A stretch of DNA of 63,143 nucleotides, filler included, from Reticulomyxa filosa (GCA_000512085.1; 15 parts of 15 records of this genome joined end to end with filler, not necessarily neighbours in it), one strand, 5' to 3'. Numbered from the whole stretch's first letter, positions 1 to 9,663 are shown. Made by a program: numbers and translations. The notes: a model not told the origin generated them from the sequence alone.

Positions 1-37
<37 letters not shown>

Positions 38-66
38 TATTTGCTTGATTAACCATATATTAATTT

Positions 67-460
67 TTAAAAATAGAACTCTTTCGTATAAGCAGCAAGT
101 GAATTAAAATAATAATAAGGAGAGACTTCGAGGGAAAATTGTGCCATAAAAAGGGCTAAGCATGAGTTACTATTTGCTGCCAAGTAAAATACAAAAGGTA
201 TCATCCAAGAAAATGGAAGTATCAGTAAAAAGCACGCGATTTTCATGTGTATATAAGCTGACTCACAATATTTTCTTACAAATGTTACACAATATGCCAG
301 TTGTGTCATTAATATTATTGCCAAGCTTAAATAATAAAATGTTAGTCTCTTTTTTTCATAGAATTCTATCAATATGTACAAATCAATTATAAAATTCGCT
401 ATATTTATTGCTATATTCGTAATATCGTACACCTTGTCCCACAGCGTGTCTTCTTTTTTT
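67..460 (-). CDS. Internal exon of a multi-pass membrane protein, possibly XK-related family (partial)
   Basis: Hydrophobic helices with a D-x3-D-like N-terminal pattern (VYDITNIAINIANFIIDLYILIEFY...FYYLSLAIIL); the gene runs off the contig end. Confidence 0.35.
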
Positions 461-2044
461 ATTTTTCGGCAAGATTAAGGTAAAATATAAAACAAAAAAA
501 AAAAACACATTTTCTTTTGAATACCCTCATTGGACATTCTTCAAAGCTGCTGTAATCGATCTATCTGTAATATTAAAATCCCTTCCTTTTTTTTTTGAAA
601 AAAGGACCTTTTCACATGGTTCAGTACATTTTATATTATAAACGATGTGTTTAAAGAAATTGAAATTCTACAAGATTACAATTTAGACTTCGATTTTTGT
701 TTTGCAACAAGTTATAATTTTCTTTTCTGTCACGTTAGTTCACTAATATATCAAGAAAAGGGCAGATATTGGATTTACATATATTTCTTGCAAGTCAACA
801 GTCGTTTAAGCTGTTAGAGAAAAAAGGGAAATCTCTAGGAGTGAAAAATAGAATAAAAGAAGCTTAAGAAATGAATAACTTCTTTAATCAAAAGATAAAT
901 CAATGCAAGTTCAGTGTATAGATTTATGCACACGTTTTTTTGTTATTATTCTTTTCTTTTTTTATTCAGTAACAAAAACTGTACACAACACTATCATTTT
1001 TTGAAATATATATTTGCACAATGAGTTAAACACGATACGGAAAAAAATTTTTGTAGCCTTGAGAATATTGTCTGTTTCTTCTGGTTCAGTTTCTCTAAAC
1101 ACAATGTTTTTCATTGATGTCCATTCGTAGTAACTTTTTTCAATAAATCAAAATGTGATATCATCATCTAACAATCTTCAAATTTTGTACAGTCGCTTCC
1201 GCATAAAAGTCTACATCTTTTCAAAAGTAACTGCAACGTTTTATAAAGTAAATATTGAAAAAAGTATATTTGTTTCAACTTTGGTAACAAAACAAAAACT
1301 TAAATGAAGTTTACTTACAAACAAGCAATTAAATTTTTTACCACTTTGTTTCGCTAGCAATTGTTGTTACTACATCAAACACTTTGTATTCTTCCAAATG
1401 ATGTTTTTATATTCTAGTCTTGTTTCTCTAAAATAAGAAATAAATTTTAAATCAATTAAAAATTAAATTCTTTATATATCGGTGGAACATTCTTCGAACG
1501 CTTGAATTTGACTTCTGATAACATATGTCGCAATTACATTATTTAGCATGATAATATTTTGTATAATATGAAGAGAATTTCACCTGAACTGTTTCATAGT
1601 GATGTTCTTTTAATATTAAAAAGCTATTTTCAAAAGACATTACAATACAAAGTGTAGTATTTGACTTGCAAAAGATAAGTTTGGAAGAATAAAAGAACTT
1701 TCCATTTTTATTGAATTTCAAAGTAAAAAACTTTTAACGTATCTTGAGCTCTTTGGACGCCTATTGTTGATACACATATAGTATAATTCAAAAAAGACTA
1801 CTAAAAAGTGTTATAATGAGACAGTGTGAAAAGTATGATTAATTTATGAGCACGCATTTTCGAAGGAAAAAAAATTATTTACATGGAGCTTGTAAAATTT
1901 GATGAAAAAAGTTAAAATATAGGAAATTGTATGTCAACATTTTTTAGCCACTTATTTTAATCAAGGCTACTTTTACGGAGTCTTTTCAGTGGTTTTTTTT
2001 TAAAAAAAACCACCGTTTAATAAAATTCAAAGTTGTACTTAAAT

Positions 2045-5000
2045 ATGTCCTCCAGAAAAGTTTTGCAAGTTGAAGGTGGAAAAGCAACCGAAGTGACAAG
2101 ACAAAAGCTGAAAGATTATTACAAAACCCAAGACAAATTGATTACATTATTTGACGACCCTCCACAGCCGATTGAGAAGTGTTATATACGACTAGTCCTT
2201 TTGACGCAACACCAGTTTCAAGAAAGAAAAAAGCAGATGACGAGCAAGAATCGAAGCAGTGAAGAAGAACAAGGAAAAGATTGCAGACAAATAAGAAATG
2301 AGGAAGATAGAAAATGGCCAGATACACTGGATTATTCATTAATCTATAGTGGCGTACAAGAGACGATAGAGTTAGATGATATTTGGAAAATAAAAGGGGA
2401 AGACGGTGAACCAGAAGTGCGCCACATTAGTATCCGTGGCGAAGCAGGGACAGGAAAAAGTGTATTGACACAAAGAATTGCATATTTATGGGCAAATAAG
2501 CAAATGTGGAATGATCAATTTCAATGGCTGTTGCACATTCCTTTGAGAAAGATTGCGAATATTTTCGAAAAGACAAAAGAGCAGAAATAATGATGGCATT
2601 GAGGCTCAATGGTCGAGCATCATGAATGAATTGGATATTCCATATTGGGATACGAATGATACAAGATGTATTGTGTATCCAAAAGGTGGGATGTTGTTAG
2701 TGTTGGATGGATTTGATGAAATTGCAAATGAATTGCATATAAAAGCAAGTTTGAGACAGTGGTTGCAACATTGTACTGAAAGTAAAAATTATTGTGTGAT
2801 AATGACAAGTCGTCCCAATTCGATATGTCCCTATTTAGATAAGAAAGCAAGAAGATTGAATGTGATTGGCTTTCAAAAGCAGGACATTCAAAATTATGTT
2901 CGTGCGTATTTTCAAAACATTTCGAGCAATGATGACAATAGCTATGAAGCAGACAGACTGATAAAGACATTGATCAATAATCCGAGCTTACAGCTATTGA
3001 GTCACACTCCGTTGTATTTACGCTTGTTTTGCTATCTTGCAAGCCAACAAATGATCGAAATGAAAGAAGAAAGAAAGGAAGATCCAATCGAAGACAAGTC
3101 ATTTGATGAATTACATGGGATGTCTGTTTCAAAATTGTATGAGAAATTGTTGGTATGTTATATGAAATGGAACTGGATCAAACTGAATGGAACAAAAGAC
3201 AAGCCAAATGAACAGGCAATGTTCAAAATTTTTGAAATGGAAATGTATTATTTGTCACAACTTGCATGGAAAGGATTGAAATGTGGACAAGTAGTAATCT
3301 CTTCTGATATACAAGAAAAGGTGCTGAATGCGACGAAAATAAAATATCCACGCAAACATATTTCAATTACATCTCAATGGTCTCGAATTCATTCATTTGG
3401 CTTTTTACAAGGACAAGAGTCTGTTAATGTATCTTATCCCAATGATCCAGTGTATTTTCCTCATTTGACATTTCAGGAATGGCTTGCCGCTTATTATTTG
3501 AGTCATTGCTTATATGGATCAACTGGCCATAAAGAAGCGCGTTCCATTTTGATCGATGAACAACTCACTCCCAAATATTCTATTATGATACCATTTATGG
3601 CTGGGATATTATATGGTTACATTGAAAACAAAAAAGATGTTGACGGATCTGGTTTGTTATATTTTTGGAAACTGTTGCATTCCTCACTTCCTCCACTCAC
3701 TTCCAGTCATCAAATGATGTTACATATGCGCTGTCTGGATGCTTGCAAAGCAGATACAAGCAGTCCATTTCTTCCATCCCAACTTCAAACATGTCACAAG
3801 GCTCTCATCCATTTGTTCAAATCATTTCTCATTGCCTGGATCAACTTCGACAAAGAGAAGCCTACGCCTATGGCGATGGATATCGGATTGTGCATCGACC
3901 ATTCGATAGAGTGATAGAATTGCATTTACCCAATCTGAGATATGTCTTACTCCATCCAGATATACATGAATGTATCATGGAACAGCTCAGTCAATTCCAA
4001 ACGCGATTGAACAAATTCGACAAGGGTAAGTTAATTGATCGATTGAGACTATTGCCATACTTGTGTGTCTCTGCAAAGACAGCAGAAGTTATAATGGAGT
4101 ATTACCACAAAGGCTTTCAACACCAAGAAAAGTATATTCGAGACATTTATATGGATGCACTTGAAACAATAGCATTGAAAGTGAGTGAATTACAAGTGGA
4201 CAATGTGTTTGAAGTTGTGATGAATGGATTTCATGACCAGAATATATACATCCATAGGAAATGTGCTAAAGCACTTGAGAGGATATCATGGAATATGAAT
4301 GAAGGACAATTGGATACTGCTTTTAAACATTTGATAGATATATTTCGCAATGGACAAATGTCTCTTTGCGACATATGTGCAAATACACTTGGAACGATTG
4401 CAGTAAAATTGGGCGCAAAACAAGTGGATTGCACTCTAGACTATATCATGTCCGGATTGAATGATAAAGATGTCAACATTTTTGTAGCCAGTGCAATAGT
4501 CCTGAAAATGCTTGTAAGGAAATTGGATGGAAGTCAATTAAGTAATATTTTTAAGCATTTGTTGAAAGGGCTGAAGAGTACGTCTAAGCATTTTCCTTTG
4601 CAATGTGCGAAATTACTTGAAGCAATTGCAATGCAATTGAATGAAAAACAATTGGATATTGTGTTCCAATTTTTGATGGATGGATTGCAAGACAGACGAA
4701 AGGTTATTCGTCGATGCTGTGTAAAATTGCTTGGGAAGCTATCAATGAAATGGAATCAGGTGCAATTGGGCAATGCTTTCCAATGTTTGATGGATGGATT
4801 AATCGATCACAAAGACAAGTATGTGCATTGGCCACATCGGGGATCATATCAGGCTATTTTGACACAATTGAATATTATGCACTTAGATGTCGCTTTCAAC
4901 TATTTGATGAGAGGTTTGAAACATGAGAAACGACGTGTTCGCAAATTATGTGTTGACTTTTTGGCAGCAATGTCAATGAAATGGAATCAAATACAATTGG

Positions 5001-7811
5001 ATACTCTCTTCATTTGTTTGATAAAGGATATGTCCAAAGACGAACATAAATACGTTCGCTATTCATGCGCACAGGCAATTCAAAGACTTGTATTGTTGCA
5101 ATTTCGATGGAATGACAAGTCATTCCGCAATGATGTTTTCGACTATCTGATGGATGGACTCCAAGATGCAAATAAGAATTTGCAATCGTCATGTGCAGAA
5201 GCAATTGGAAAGATAGCGACGAAATTGGATAAACGACAATTGAATATCGCCGGAGGATGTTTGAAGAATAAACTCAAAGATAAGCGCGAAGATATATTAG
5301 TGCGTATGTCATGCGCGGAATCGATTGGAAGGATAGCACTGCAATTAAATGCGAAGCAATTGGATGGCATTTTGAAATGTCTGATAGACGGGACAAGTGA
5401 TAATGAAAGCAACACATTTGTGCGAAAATATTGTGCATGCTCGCTCGAAAGATTGCTAACGCGATGGACTAAAACAGATCTAACAAAACATGTTCGTAGG
5501 CTGTTTGGTGAATCACCCGAAACGATACTAACGAAATGTAAGGAAAAACAATTTGATAATACCATTAACGGCTTGGTCCAGGGATTCGAAGAAAAAGATG
5601 AAGGTATTCGTCATCATTGTGTGGAGTCACTTGCATACCTATTGACAAACTTGCATGGCAAACAATTGGATAATGGGTTTCGTCGTCTAATGAAGGGACT
5701 TGATGCTGGGAATTGGTACTGTGCCGAAACGATCCGAAGAATAGCGCTGCAATTGGATGCAACACAATTGAAGGATTTGCTTCATCGCTTGGAATATGGA
5801 TTCCATGAAAAAGATTATTTGGTCCGAAATTCATGTGCAGAAATATTGCGAACCATATCCGCGCAATTGGATCAACGACAGATGGCCAGCACATTCAAAG
5901 TGTTCATACATGGATTCAACAATGCAAAAGGCAACATTCGCAATTCTTGTGCAAAGGCGCTGGTAACCATTATTATGAGATTGGACGACGAGCAATTGTG
6001 GGAATTGATGCAGAATTTTTTGCAAAGTTTGAAAGTGAGCGATTGGGAGATACGCAAATATGTAAATCAGAAAGCTTTGGAAATATCAGACGATATGTGG
6101 CAACGTGTCACAATGGCCGCATTGAAAGAAAACATTCGAATGAAAAGGGAAAAGAATAGCAGTCAAATGGAACTATTGGCATTTGGTTTGCTAACTTATA
6201 ATCCTCGTATTCAATTCCATTGCAATGATTCCTATGATCATGAAAATATTATCACTCCGGATGCGATCGATGGATTGAGGGGCTGTTGCAATAAACAGGC
6301 CATGGAATGGAATTTTCCAACTCAACAAAAATGGAGTGATCATGATACTTTACAAATTAAGTTAACATTACAAGATTCAAATGATAATGAACATAACGAG
6401 CGCTATGCGACTGTTCATGAGGCAGCAAAATTGGGTGACATATCACGACTGAAATCTGCATTGGAATGCTATTGCATTGACATCAATGATACATTTAATA
6501 AACATGGACAAGCCCTATTGCATGTAGCGATCTACAACAGTCAATGGAATGTTGCTCGCTACTGCATTGAACGCGGTGCGTGGATTGATGTCAGAGGGGT
6601 TGCCCCGAATGCGACCGCTCTACAAACTCCTTTGGAATATATCATTGGACTTATGAATGATAACAAGACGACGAAAAATTTGGTAGAAATGTGCAAATGG
6701 ATATTGAGGAAACGAGTGATATTTCCAATGAGACAAATTGAATATGCTATTGATTATGTCAAGGATAGATTAATGGAAAGTTATGTCGGTCAATCCATTA
6801 ATCTTGAAGATTATAAGACGTTGATGCAAGAAGGTGCAAGTTTCTTGTTGGGAGTGCATCAAGGACAATTGCAAAAGATGTTGATCAACTGTAATTTACA
6901 CTATTGGGCCACAGCCCGAAATGTTACGTTAATTAAAACAGAAAATTCCAACAAAAAAAGATTTGATGAAGGATGGTACCCAATACAATTCTTAAGATAT
7001 CGAATATTTTTGTTGTTTGAAATATGTGTGCGATTGAAACGAGAAGGAAGAACTTTCATTGAATTACCAAAGAATACAACATTTGAACAATTGTATGAAA
7101 AGGGAACTAAAGAATTACAAGTGCAATTGACAACATATTGGGATCACATCACGGCCACAAAGATACAAAACAAGTGCCCAGAGTTACTTGATGACTGGAG
7201 TTGTAATGTGGTTGATCGTTTAGTTCGTTTAAAACCAACGTCGTTCAATAATAATTGTTGTGAAATGAGCTTAATGGTCGGTCATAAAAGCCATTCTATT
7301 TATTTGAGTTTGTGTAAAACGTCCTCTTTTATTTTAGTGCGGATTGATAATCGATGGATGCAAACTGTACCGTCCAATACTCCTCATCCAAGCATGACTA
7401 CAACAAAGGACAATAATTTTAAATTGATACAACCTTATGTGGCTGCATACTTCCCATGTAATAGCGTAAATATCAGTCAAAATAAGAAATGGTTGAAAGA
7501 TTATATCAAAAAGGCATCAAAATTGAAAAATAGCAAACATAAACAGAGCATGGCACATTTGTATTGTAGCAATACTCAATCCCCAAAAACATATTCCTCC
7601 TCGTGAGGGAAGTTTACCATCGATCGCAAAAGATTGGCCATATCGTCCAGTGCAAACCGATGCAAACAATTGTTATTTGCGGGGACATAATGTCGGATAT
7701 CGAATTCGTTTGGGCGGTGATGGCGCTTATGAATGGTTTCGTGATCAGGAAGGCAAAAGCTTTGTGTTCAATAGGAGCCATCACAACAAAGGCATCAACA
7801 AAAAAGATTAA
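2045..7811 (+). CDS. NLR-like STAND NTPase: NACHT + HEAT repeats + ankyrin repeats + putative C-terminal cysteine-protease-like domain; intronless, three frameshifts (pseudogene or sequencing errors)
   Basis: Walker A GEAGTGKS (2438-2461), Walker B LLVLDGFDE, VIMTSRP, PLYL and winged-helix FPHLTFQEWLAAYYL; ~40-aa HEAT units; ankyrin motifs VHEAAKLG and LLHVAIYN; frame changes near 2585, 3855 and 7585. Confidence 0.88.
4080..6100 (+). repeat. Coding HEAT-repeat array (~40 aa per unit)
   Basis: Recurring LDxxFxxLMxGLxDxxxxVRxxCAxxLxxI units. Confidence 0.85.
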
Positions 7812-8274
7812 TTAAAATTAACTAAGACAATACAAATAAATCCTAAAAAGGAGAAATGTCACAATGCAATACATATGTATTTTTATTCTCATTTTCTCGA
7901 ATGGAAATCTTAGAGGAAAAGAATAAATTACTTCATTAACTTATCTTTTCAAATGTTTTCATTTTTAAATTATGTTTTTGATTTTGTTATCACATAAAAA
8001 TTTTTCAATCAGTCTAAAGTGTAAAATTTGTACATCCTAATTTTCGTTCCAAATAACAAAAAATTTAACTGAGAATGAGATAATTTTTTTATTATTATAT
8101 CATGGTCAAAGCTGGTCGCCAATCTTATATTCATATGCGCCACCCCAGAAAATGTTCTTTATTTGTGTAATATTATGAAATCGAAAACAAAAACAAAGTG
8201 AATTAAATATCCTAATTTCTTATCTATCCCTTTGCAAAATTTTGCAAGCACCACATGCATAAGGCGATGAAATA

Positions 8275-8402
8275 CAGTATGTTGCAAAGAAAACTGAACG
8301 CCTAAAACGATATCTTATGCTGATAATTGATTTTCTCCATGAAAAATCAATTATCATCATAAGATATCGTTTTAGGCGTTCAGTTTTTTTTGCAACCTAC
8401 TG
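8275..8402. mobile_element. Palindromic MITE, Tc1/mariner-type
   Basis: 128-bp near-perfect inverted repeat with CAGT...ACTG termini, flanked by TA on both sides (8273-8274, 8403-8404). Confidence 0.8.
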
Positions 8403-8690
8403 TACTTTTAATCATACTAACTTGTCTATGACTTGGACACGATAAAATACTGCATGTAAGAAAATTGTATGTCCTTCCTTTTTTATTCCAGATCTACTCT
8501 TCTTAAACTTTTGTAGATTGAAAGCACTTTTTTGTTTGAACTTTAAAAATGTATCGAATGCAGTTTGATAAAGAAGCTGATATGTGTTTTTATTAGTTTT
8601 CTTTTAATGTTTCGCTTAACATTACTCACGAACATAGTTTTCATTTTTATTGATGCTTTGTAAAGCATTAAAAAATAGTTTCTGTAATTT

Positions 8691-9626
8691 TCACCTCCAA
8701 ATCTGGATTGTTCGGTCATAAGATGACGACACAATAGTATTCCCATCTGCCGAAATATCTATGGCTGTTACACCTTCAGAATGTCCAATTAATCTCTGTA
8801 TTTCCCGCCCTGATTCAATATTCCATATCCGAATTGTTTTATCCCATGAGCTGGACACAATAGTTTGACCATCACATAAATATTTTACATCGCTCACAAA
8901 ATTTAAATGTCCCTTTATTTGTTTTACTTCTTTTCCCAACGTTACGTCCCATATGCGGATAATATTATCTTTTGAACAAGAAACAATAGATTGACCATCT
9001 GGAGAAAAGTGTATCTTTTGCACGGCATTCCAATGTCCCTTCCATTCATTTATTTTTTTTTTGGACTCCACATCCCAAATAATAATAGTGCCATCAAAAA
9101 CTGACGCCAGAGTTTGACCATTTGGTGAAAATTGTATGTCATAGGGCTCACCGTGATATTCCCATAGTTGTTTTACCGACATCTCGGATTCCACATCCCA
9201 CAATCGAATTGTGTTATCACATGAAATTGATACTATTTGTTTTCCATTTGGTGAAAATCTAATCCCACTTATTGCTTCTAAATGTCCTCTGAATTCTCTT
9301 ATTATTTCTAGTGTGTCTAAATCACACAATTGAATTCTATCCCTTATGCAAAGGGCAATCATCTTGCCATCTGGTGAAAATTGTCCCCCAAAAATTCCAA
9401 TGCCATAATGTCCAAAAGAATGGATACAATGTCCTGACTCAATGTCCCATATGCAAATTGTGTGATCATCCGATGAAGAAACAGCCATTGTGGCATCTGG
9501 TGATAATCTTATACTCCTTACCACATTAGAATGCCCTCTCAAAATTTTCAATGATTGCAAATAACGTATCTTTATGTCCTCAATGTAAACGCATGGATTC
9601 ATTGCGTTAAAGGAATAATACAACAC
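8691..9626 (-). CDS. WD40-repeat protein (5' part lost at the contig end)
   Basis: About 7 GH...WD repeats, e.g. GHSNVVRSIRLSPD...TICIWD and GHLEAISGIRFSPNG...TIRLWD. Confidence 0.92.
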   Translation of the reverse strand: MLYYSFNAMNPCVYIEDIKIRYLQSLKILRGHSNVVRSIRLSPDATMAVSSSDDHTICIWDIESGHCIHSFGHYGIGIFGGQFSPDGKMIALCIRDRIQLCDLDTLEIIREFRGHLEAISGIRFSPNGKQIVSISCDNTIRLWDVESEMSVKQLWEYHGEPYDIQFSPNGQTLASVFDGTIIIWDVESKKKINEWKGHWNAVQKIHFSPDGQSIVSCSKDNIIRIWDVTLGKEVKQIKGHLNFVSDVKYLCDGQTIVSSSWDKTIRIWNIESGREIQRLIGHSEGVTAIDISADGNTIVSSSYDRTIQIWR

Positions 9627-9663
9627 ATTTGTCTCATTTCGGACTCAGAAAAAAAAAAAAAAA

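Follow-up and report, generated by a model that had tools for sequence, protein, structure and literature searches.

NLR-like receptors built around a STAND NTPase are known from animals, plants, fungi and bacteria and, to our knowledge, have hardly been described in Rhizaria. In bacterial bNACHT and other prokaryotic STAND defence proteins, a central NACHT domain is accompanied by repeats and an attached enzymatic domain, while fungal NACHT NLRs with HEAT, ankyrin (ANK) or TPR repeats, such as protein P0016 of Schizothecium vesticola, form large paralogous repertoires. STAND proteins in which the output lies C-terminal to the sensor repeats are represented by NLRP1/CARD8, with leucine-rich repeats (LRR) and FIIND-CARD, and by MalT, with SUPR/TPR repeats and a LuxR helix-turn-helix. 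Here, we analyse a gene of the foraminifer Reticulomyxa filosa that occupies positions 2045–7811 on the forward strand of a window of 63,143 nucleotides (parts of 15 records of genome GCA_000512085.1, joined with filler). It is one member of an intronless family of STAND NTPases, at least 100 copies strong and about 1,900 amino acids (aa) in length, whose C-terminal domain (the “tail”) is predicted to share the fold of the Legionella effectors AnkH and LegA15.

With the prokaryotic defence proteins, the gene shares the central NACHT, the repeats and the attached enzyme-like domain, and bacterial members of the R. filosa clade exist, one of them with a TIR domain; it differs in having no counterpart among the PADLOC models, in that the bacterial hosts are obligate intracellular symbionts, and in an output module that would be new for the class. 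Common to the R. filosa family and the fungal proteins are NACHT plus HEAT, a large paralogous repertoire and the motif HLTFQE.FAA, which is found in P0016. The fungal NACHT is, however, more distant (79 bits for the best fungal match versus 128–211 bits for bacterial-type ones, the metagenomic protein P0049 reaching 211 bits), and the fungal proteins have no ANK-tail module. Output placed after the repeats, which the first-pass annotation had singled out as an inverted layout, has precedents in NLRP1/CARD8 and MalT, although these possess other repeats and outputs and their homology to the present family is limited to the NTPase.

AnkH is composed of four ankyrin repeats and a cysteine-protease-like domain with the triad H243-D258-C324, in which the His begins a strand, the Asp ends the following one and the Cys lies at a helix N-terminus; its conserved motifs are rGHa, D/NRg and GNC (PMC6712400). 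The triad is required in vivo, and the authors proposed that a closed pocket opens upon substrate binding (PMC6712400). Both AnkH (6MCA) and LegA15, also termed AnkD (7EW8, 7KJ6), carry ankyrin repeats directly before a helical part and an α/β domain, and this succession is also predicted for the R. filosa proteins. The two Legionella effectors are secreted proteins of about 460 aa that stand alone, while the R. filosa module is fused to NACHT-HEAT and encoded in a eukaryotic genome.

The DNA analysed was contig C19654 (window positions 1–9663), taken from an assembly of 101.9 Mb in 50,809 contigs. The database proteins nearest to the gene are all assigned to R. filosa. The gene comprises about 1921 codons in four frame pieces and is collinear, over four high-scoring segment pairs, with an intact paralogue on contig C11739 (L012:1533–7196), an uninterrupted open reading frame (ORF) of 5.7 kb and 1888 aa with an identical order of parts. 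Intact paralogues collinear with the window gene measure 1795–1977 aa, which supports the earlier view of a single self-contained gene as opposed to separate transcripts; that the gene is intronless likewise proved true of the family. Frame-break positions were set by collinearity with the C11739 paralogue, the pieces were searched separately with no joined protein being built, and the C11739 paralogue stood in for the window copy in whole-protein work. At least 102 places in the R. filosa genome match the NACHT module, the closest being 70–72% identical, and at least 129 match the tail, some of them within open frames of 1,800–1,900 aa; being conserved at that many places, the tail is not a chance ORF. 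The family is built from a short leader, NACHT, a helical arm, a variable HEAT array, and two to three ankyrin repeats together with a 360-aa domain.

Judged by its sequence, the window protein belongs to the NACHT clade of STAND NTPases. The NACHT domain (2423–2918) matches PF05729 on two pieces (E 1.2e-8 and 1.5e-8; 35.4 and 35.1 bits), the match being divided by the first frame break, and the intact paralogue scores 59.4 bits, all above the gathering cut-off of 26.7. Its motifs are a P-loop or Walker A, GEAGTGKS, at 2438–2461, a Walker B, LLVLDGFDE, at 2694–2720, and IMTSRP at 2799–2816. No LRR family was detected by Pfam in the window or in the intact paralogue, the repeats being HEAT and ANK; the protein would thus be classed as NLR-like only, a strict animal NLR combining NACHT with LRR.

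The tail (6650–7808, about 386 aa) probably consists of a helical part and an AnkH/LegA15-like, cysteine-protease-like domain, as deduced from alignments, a structure model and fold searches. It is currently annotated as “hypothetical protein” and had no match in Pfam, NCBIfam or PADLOC. A search of 1.84 billion representative proteins with a profile built from 13 R. filosa tails gave 153 matches at E ≤ 0.001, many of them outside R. filosa. In an alignment of 57 tails with approximately 20% identity (numbering of the C11739 tail), E152, H210, N229 and Y294 are invariant, and the residues conserved in at least 90% of the sequences include D228, Q319, C325, R226 and R337. The order of His, Asp/Asn, Gln and Cys is that of clan CE peptidases, with the motifs GH..H, DNR and NNC. 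All site codons are intact in the window, namely those for His (7292–7294), Asp-Asn (7346–7351), Gln (7653–7655), Cys (7671–7673) and a downstream His (7686–7688). Among the R. filosa tails, C325 is present in 25 of 29 and H210 in 27 of 29, and the ratio of nonsynonymous to synonymous substitution rates (dN/dS) of the tail among paralogues is 0.17–0.43.

Variant sites occur in L022, L027, L035, L039 and L017. In three of the four Cys-less tails, where Ser or Gly takes the place of the Cys, the His five residues downstream is also gone; L035 additionally lacks H210, and L027 retains the Cys without the downstream His. The pair L022/L027 has a dN/dS of 0.62 versus 0.17–0.43 elsewhere, indicating relaxed constraint. 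Tails with lost site residues may be pseudo-enzymes or decaying members.

AlphaFold2 modelled the C11739 tail from the 57-sequence alignment with a predicted local distance difference test score (pLDDT) of 91.4 and a predicted template modelling (TM) score of 0.92. In the model, H210 is placed where a strand begins, D228 where the following strand ends and C325 at a helix N-terminus, so that the order His, Asp/Asn, Cys and the secondary-structure positions would correspond to those of AnkH and LegA15; the short motifs GH, D/N-R and N-C are similar. The spacing between Asp and Cys differs, with about 97 aa in the tail and 66–71 in the two effectors. In an exhaustive structural comparison with 48,161 Protein Data Bank (PDB) representatives, the only chains above Z 5 were AnkH (Z 13.3, 240 residues aligned, root-mean-square deviation 4.5) and AnkD/LegA15 (Z 11.1, 214 aligned, 3.8). 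An initial model from 13 sequences (pLDDT 74, Cys region disordered) was superseded by this one; searches with it returned nothing in Foldseek and AnkH at Z 7.4, within noise.

The next structural matches belong to clan CE, with XopD at Z 4.9, SENP8 at 4.5, NopD at 4.3, SENP7 at 4.2 and Ulp1 at 3.6; SENP3, SENP5, poxvirus I7L, African swine fever virus pS273R, the YopJ-family members HopZ1a and AvrA, CidB and RavZ were further low matches. Although the Z-scores for a Ulp1-like fold are low (3.2–4.9), the clan CE matches form a coherent block. The order of His, Asp/Glu/Asn, Gln and Cys is shared with Ulp1/SENP, XopD, NopD, adenain and the YopJ family, and in Ulp1 and adenain the oxyanion Gln stands six residues ahead of the Cys, as does the tail Gln. 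Unlike clan CE members, the tail contains a large insertion between Asp and Gln and matches no Pfam peptidase family. What we claim is the same predicted fold and site layout as in AnkH and LegA15, which is not proven family membership. For the tail, we predict an enzyme-like fold and a conserved site of the catalytic type, in line with the enzymatic tail expected at the outset, and its chemistry would be that of a protease or of a LegA15-like GTPase.

In the ESM Atlas, a shape search with the tail was uninformative (TM < 0.3). A feature search with the L012 tail had unnamed clusters nearest, one of them mostly eukaryotic (Haptophyta, 0.93), and gave a weak lead (0.79) to the N-terminal ShET2/Toxin_15 family. 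Profile searches against PDB sequences yielded nothing beyond chance matches to designed helical proteins.

Among 14 scanned homologues from outside R. filosa, 11 carry ankyrin repeats immediately ahead of the tail domain, and the order ANK-tail is seen in P0086, P0091, P0094, P0095, P0097, P0098, P0110, P0118, P0121, P0136 and others. The architectures comprise U-box-ANK-tail in P0091 from Holosporaceae, ANK-tail alone or with TPR in several metagenomic proteins, NACHT followed by ANK-tail in Jidaibacter, Midichloriaceae and a metagenome-assembled genome (MAG) of Pseudomonadota, TIR-NACHT-HEAT-ANK-tail in P0118, and [ANK-tail]-NACHT-HEAT in P0086. ANK-tail hence occurs at either end within the same NACHT-HEAT clade. 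On the basis of this co-occurrence and of the arrangement in AnkH and LegA15, we regard the ankyrin repeats and the tail as one module rather than the ankyrin repeats as a second sensor array.

Importantly, the architecture of the whole gene is common to R. filosa and obligate intracellular bacteria of protists. P0098 of Jidaibacter acanthamoeba (1882 aa) follows the R. filosa protein collinearly through leader, NACHT and arm (26% identity, E 3e-33) and on into ANK and tail. A pattern scan of GTDB, built from the bacterial tail subset A3, located the domain in the Holosporaceae “Namur”, in Midichloriaceae, in Jidaibacter and in a Proteobacteria MAG. P0037 and P0086 have bacterial gene neighbourhoods, P0118 adjoins minD, minE and valS, and P0042, on a TARA contig with tandem paralogues, adjoins efp, HU, RNase E, an ATP/ADP translocase (TLC) and Hc1, a set of neighbours that suggests a Chlamydiae-like organism. 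In the bacterial relatives P0118 (L041), P0086 (L044) and P0042 (L042), domains are shuffled around the same NACHT-HEAT core. One neighbour of P0086 is an ANK protein with a weak match to glucosyltransferase 88, a family of the Legionella Lgt/SetA type.

A maximum-likelihood tree of the tail unites the 13 sequences of R. filosa in one clade with support 100, which is nested beside P0037/P0039, then P0042/P0049 and then P0071; this group as a whole is sister to a Rickettsiales/Holosporales group with support 97. R. filosa is the only named eukaryote among the homologues found. These data are read most simply as one transfer between the foraminifer and an intracellular bacterium, after which the gene was amplified. 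We slightly favour bacterium to eukaryote as the direction, since the branches of known origin around the clade are all bacterial and the genes are intronless.

Turning to the remaining parts of the window gene, long open segments in two alternating forward frames are seen at 2024–2587, 2547–3911, 3644–7603 and 7527–7808. The GC content is 34–41% over the gene versus 26–30% in the flanks. The start codon, ATG at 2045, is the first in-frame one downstream of a stop, and TAA at 7809–7811 terminates the gene. The N-terminal leader (2045–2437) has 131 aa and the conserved motif KLKDYYK..DKL..LFDD, which is also N-terminal in bacterial homologues, and no family was found for it in a Pfam search, in keeping with the first-pass annotation, which had described about 130 aa devoid of an effector domain before Walker A. 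P0098 aligns from residue 2, in paralogues the leader motif likewise stands at the start, immediately behind in-frame stops, and in the 2 kb 5' of the gene, where an upstream exon was sought, there are short ORFs only, at 26% GC. An exon supplying an N-terminal effector is therefore not indicated, as paralogues and bacterial homologues all start at this leader motif.

NACHT is followed by a helical and winged-helix arm (2919–4084) that is conserved with the bacterial proteins P0098, P0136, P0086 and P0049 and contains the family motifs HLTFQEW (3462–3482) and RCLDACKAD (3729–3755). The HEAT array (4085–6058) comprises 16 units of about 38 aa according to a self-built repeat hidden Markov model (HMM); Pfam HEAT-type matches extend to 6058, and on the third open segment PF02985 and PF13646 reach E 3.3e-18 and 1.7e-11, respectively. 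A linker (6059–6406), partly conserved with Jidaibacter and containing the motif CCNKQA.E..FP, leads to the two to three ankyrin repeats (6407–6646), which abut the tail. These are weak in Pfam (Ank_2/Ank_3 near 6400–6610), with Ank_2 at 17.9 bits under its cut-off of 27.3, while paralogue L012 reaches 23.0 bits for Ank (cut-off 21.1) and bacterial homologues have E-values of 1e-8 to 1e-27. NACHT, a long HEAT array, probable ankyrin repeats and a tail of roughly 390 aa, all described in the first-pass annotation, lie at the coordinates given there.

The HEAT copy number varies between paralogues: the window gene has 16 units, the C11739 gene 17, and others have 12, 15, 19 and 30 (self-built HMM). 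HEAT is also the most divergent part, with about 38% identity between paralogues compared with 57–61% for NACHT and tail. Some long paralogues, namely L011:8394–8867 (C15901), L006, L009 and L015, end in an extra domain of about 140–160 aa with the motif VY.GIAVEQA.V, for which Pfam returned no family. With the C-terminus of P0136, a bacterial MAG protein, this extension shares 40% identity, a value above those of the other domains. It is absent downstream of the window stop, where it was sought, only its first 16 residues matching before the stop, and absent from the C11739 gene as well.

Composition is strongly heterogeneous inside this one family. The GC content at third codon positions of the tail domain, over 25 paralogues and the window copy, is continuous from 0.10 to 0.39, with 0.34 in the window, and the intact C11739 gene has 21–27% GC, lower than its own flanks. 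The post-NACHT arm carries low-complexity inserts in L014:1369–2574 and L017:1186–2478 (alternating Asn-Asp, Ile-Met and Lys stretches, and long stretches of Glu/Asp), and frame changes often come after these inserts.

Elsewhere on the window contig, positions 8691–9644 of the reverse strand encode the C-terminal part of a WD40-repeat protein with at least six repeats (PF00400, E 1e-62), convergent with the NACHT gene and running off the contig end. Next to paralogue L019 (C27964), a WD40 ORF adjoins on the same strand, unlike in the window, which indicates no fixed synteny. A 135-aa open frame at 70–474 on the reverse strand is rich in hydrophobic residues, has no Pfam family and 26% GC, and may be due to chance.

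Our best explanation, which we hold on the whole to be probable, combines a STAND NTPase family, an AnkH-like tail, a single exchange and a ligand-gated switch. The gene type would have been exchanged once with an intracellular bacterium, more likely from the bacterium to the foraminifer, and then amplified. By analogy with other STAND proteins, we infer that the fast-evolving HEAT array would bind a ligand and keep the protein inactive; ligand binding would let NACHT exchange nucleotide and oligomerise, and clustering would activate the C-terminal ANK-enzyme module. With a protein bound to its ankyrin repeats, the module would then cleave or deconjugate this target or, in the LegA15-like alternative, hydrolyse GTP. 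The closed pocket proposed for AnkH would fit such STAND control of the tail module. Copy number, variation in repeat number, broken copies and decayed sites would fit a role in conflict, be it immunity or symbiont control, and an immune or cell-death role is suggested by analogy only.

Several results speak against this explanation. The link to AnkH is structural only, since the tail profiles A1 and A2 reached neither AnkH nor LegA15 among all PDB sequences at E up to 10, and in this lack of detectable profile similarity the tail differs from both. Foldseek on the PDB with the good model found nothing at E ≤ 0.001, AnkD/LegA15 ranking 15–24 with a probability of 0.66 and a TM-score of 0.33. 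AnkH showed no protease activity in vitro (PMC6712400), and for LegA15 an atypical GTPase activity has been reported, on which the H268A mutation had little effect (PMC9757750). None of the PADLOC defence models matches NACHT or tail. As P0118 has an N-terminal TIR beside ANK-tail, the tail need not be the output. With regard to the direction of transfer, the tree was a quick, midpoint-rooted one with many branches of unknown origin and poor sampling of protists. Finally, the window copy itself has no intact ORF.

The last point leads to the rival explanation that survives best, for which we see almost an even chance: the window copy may be a dead pseudogene with real breaks, one of many decaying duplicates, and the locus functionless whatever the family does. 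There are exactly three single-base frame breaks (net +1, −1, +1), matching the number counted in the first-pass annotation, between the pieces 2045–2584, 2586–3857, 3860–7585 and 7596–7808. At break 1 (2584–2586, net +1), homology changes frame at an AAA run (2585–2587) near two AAAA runs, and break 3 (7585–7596, net +1) coincides with CCCC and AAAAA runs (7581–7589); two of the three thus lie at A or C runs, which is common for sequencing errors. Break 2 (3857–3860, net −1), by contrast, is located outside runs of three or more identical bases. Decay is further favoured by the mere presence of three breaks within 5.8 kb, by the frequency of broken paralogues (stops inside 42 of 129 tail matches; L013, L017, L019 and L024 split) and by the lack of the roughly 140-aa C-terminal extension present in some paralogues and bacterial homologues, although the short forms include the intact C11739 ORF. 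On the other side, about 1921 codons contain no in-frame stop once the three shifts are followed, and every conserved residue of NACHT and of the tail site is intact. These residues, together with a dN/dS of 0.25–0.30 for the window tail against its closest paralogues, argue that the copy was under constraint until recently at least. The breaks may have arisen in assembly or else by recent pseudogenisation.

In GenBank/UniProt, the locus is represented by the gene model P0009 (X6MND9, “NTPase”, 1677 aa), which begins at Walker B, with the P-loop missing, and spans breaks 2 and 3 by two short GT..AG “introns”, the one for break 2 being 35 nucleotides long and located about 140 nucleotides upstream of the break. 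In comparison with paralogues, these “introns” cut out conserved residues, among them a stretch of the tail immediately ahead of the Cys motif; as paralogues show conserved coding sequence there, we consider them artefacts.

A second rival, which we think unlikely while giving it real weight, concerns the chemistry. The tail might be a LegA15-like nucleotide hydrolase or nucleotide-binding switch, in which the Cys activates water and Gln and Arg bind phosphate. LegA15 is the second-best structural match, and its GTPase activity needs C361, Q356, R291 (next to N290), K/R367 and R408, whereas H268A affects it little (PMC9757750). The tails conserve comparable residues, namely the motif DNR with its Arg, a Gln and an Asp ahead of the Cys, and Arg residues after it (R226, R337 and, in R. 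filosa, R328/R335). However, the GTPase activity of LegA15 has been described in one report only, thiol proteases make up all of the lower structural matches, and AnkH, whose triad is needed in vivo, is the best match. Moreover, a His210 that is invariant in 57 sequences at ~20% identity is better understood as a catalytic base than as a bystander.

It is also conceivable, if a shade less probable again, that ANK-tail acts as a sensor, bait or regulatory domain, with another output partner, or that the family is what remains of a symbiont gene that was amplified, with no role as a receptor. The bacterial P0118, in which a TIR, a classical output, is N-terminal and ANK-tail C-terminal, speaks for such a function, as do the nature of ankyrin repeats as protein-binding modules and the few R. 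filosa copies that stay open without the tail Cys and His. In P0086, by contrast, ANK-tail is N-terminal and thus occupies the usual effector place in NACHT proteins; furthermore, no other candidate output domain is present in the R. filosa proteins, and the tail site residues are strongly conserved.

The layout as originally proposed, a protist-specific inverted NLR in which HEAT and ANK are independent sensor arrays followed by a separate effector, has become improbable. While the domain order NACHT-HEAT-ANK-tail is indeed as described, ANK accompanies the tail in proteins without HEAT and NACHT (P0091, P0097, P0110, P0121, as well as AnkH and LegA15), and the idea of two different sensor arrays gave way to that of one ANK-tail module. 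Neither is the layout peculiar to protists, as intracellular bacteria also have full-length proteins of the type NACHT-(HEAT)-ANK-tail; among the bacterial relatives, P0086 carries ANK-tail ahead of NACHT-HEAT and P0118 adds a TIR. The view, finally, that the contig is bacterial contamination, for instance from an endosymbiont, and not foraminiferal nuclear DNA, is highly implausible: bacterial closest relatives outside Reticulomyxa and the lack of introns would agree with it, but more than 100 diverged copies are spread over more than 100 contigs, the flank of about 2 kb at 26% GC is free of long ORFs, and a WD40 gene beside the window copy and a G-alpha gene beside one paralogue share contigs with family members, the latter arguing that the family is nuclear.

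No paper naming both Reticulomyxa filosa and NACHT was found in the literature searched, and with respect to that literature three aspects are new: the fold assignment of the tail, the view of ANK-tail as an AnkH/LegA15-like module subject to STAND control, and an architecture shared by a foraminifer and protist-associated intracellular bacteria. The far-reaching version, according to which the foraminifer gained a complete NLR-like gene with an AnkH/LegA15-type output from an intracellular bacterium and amplified it to more than 100 diversifying immune or symbiont-control copies, is put forward tentatively, as a possibility that we do not yet favour. If it is true, a core Legionella effector module would be an ancient conflict-system effector regulated by a STAND switch, and the family would be the first eukaryote-encoded one with the AnkH/LegA15 fold. 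A predicted fold and candidate active site are now assigned to a domain found at 129 or more genome places, which is linked to the Legionella core effector AnkH and to LegA15, a protein of disputed chemistry. The sharing between a free-living foraminifer and intracellular bacteria provides a concrete case for the flow of immune-type receptor genes between host and symbiont. The intact paralogues would constitute a natural system in which the module is under the control of a switch, and they may help in finding its substrate.

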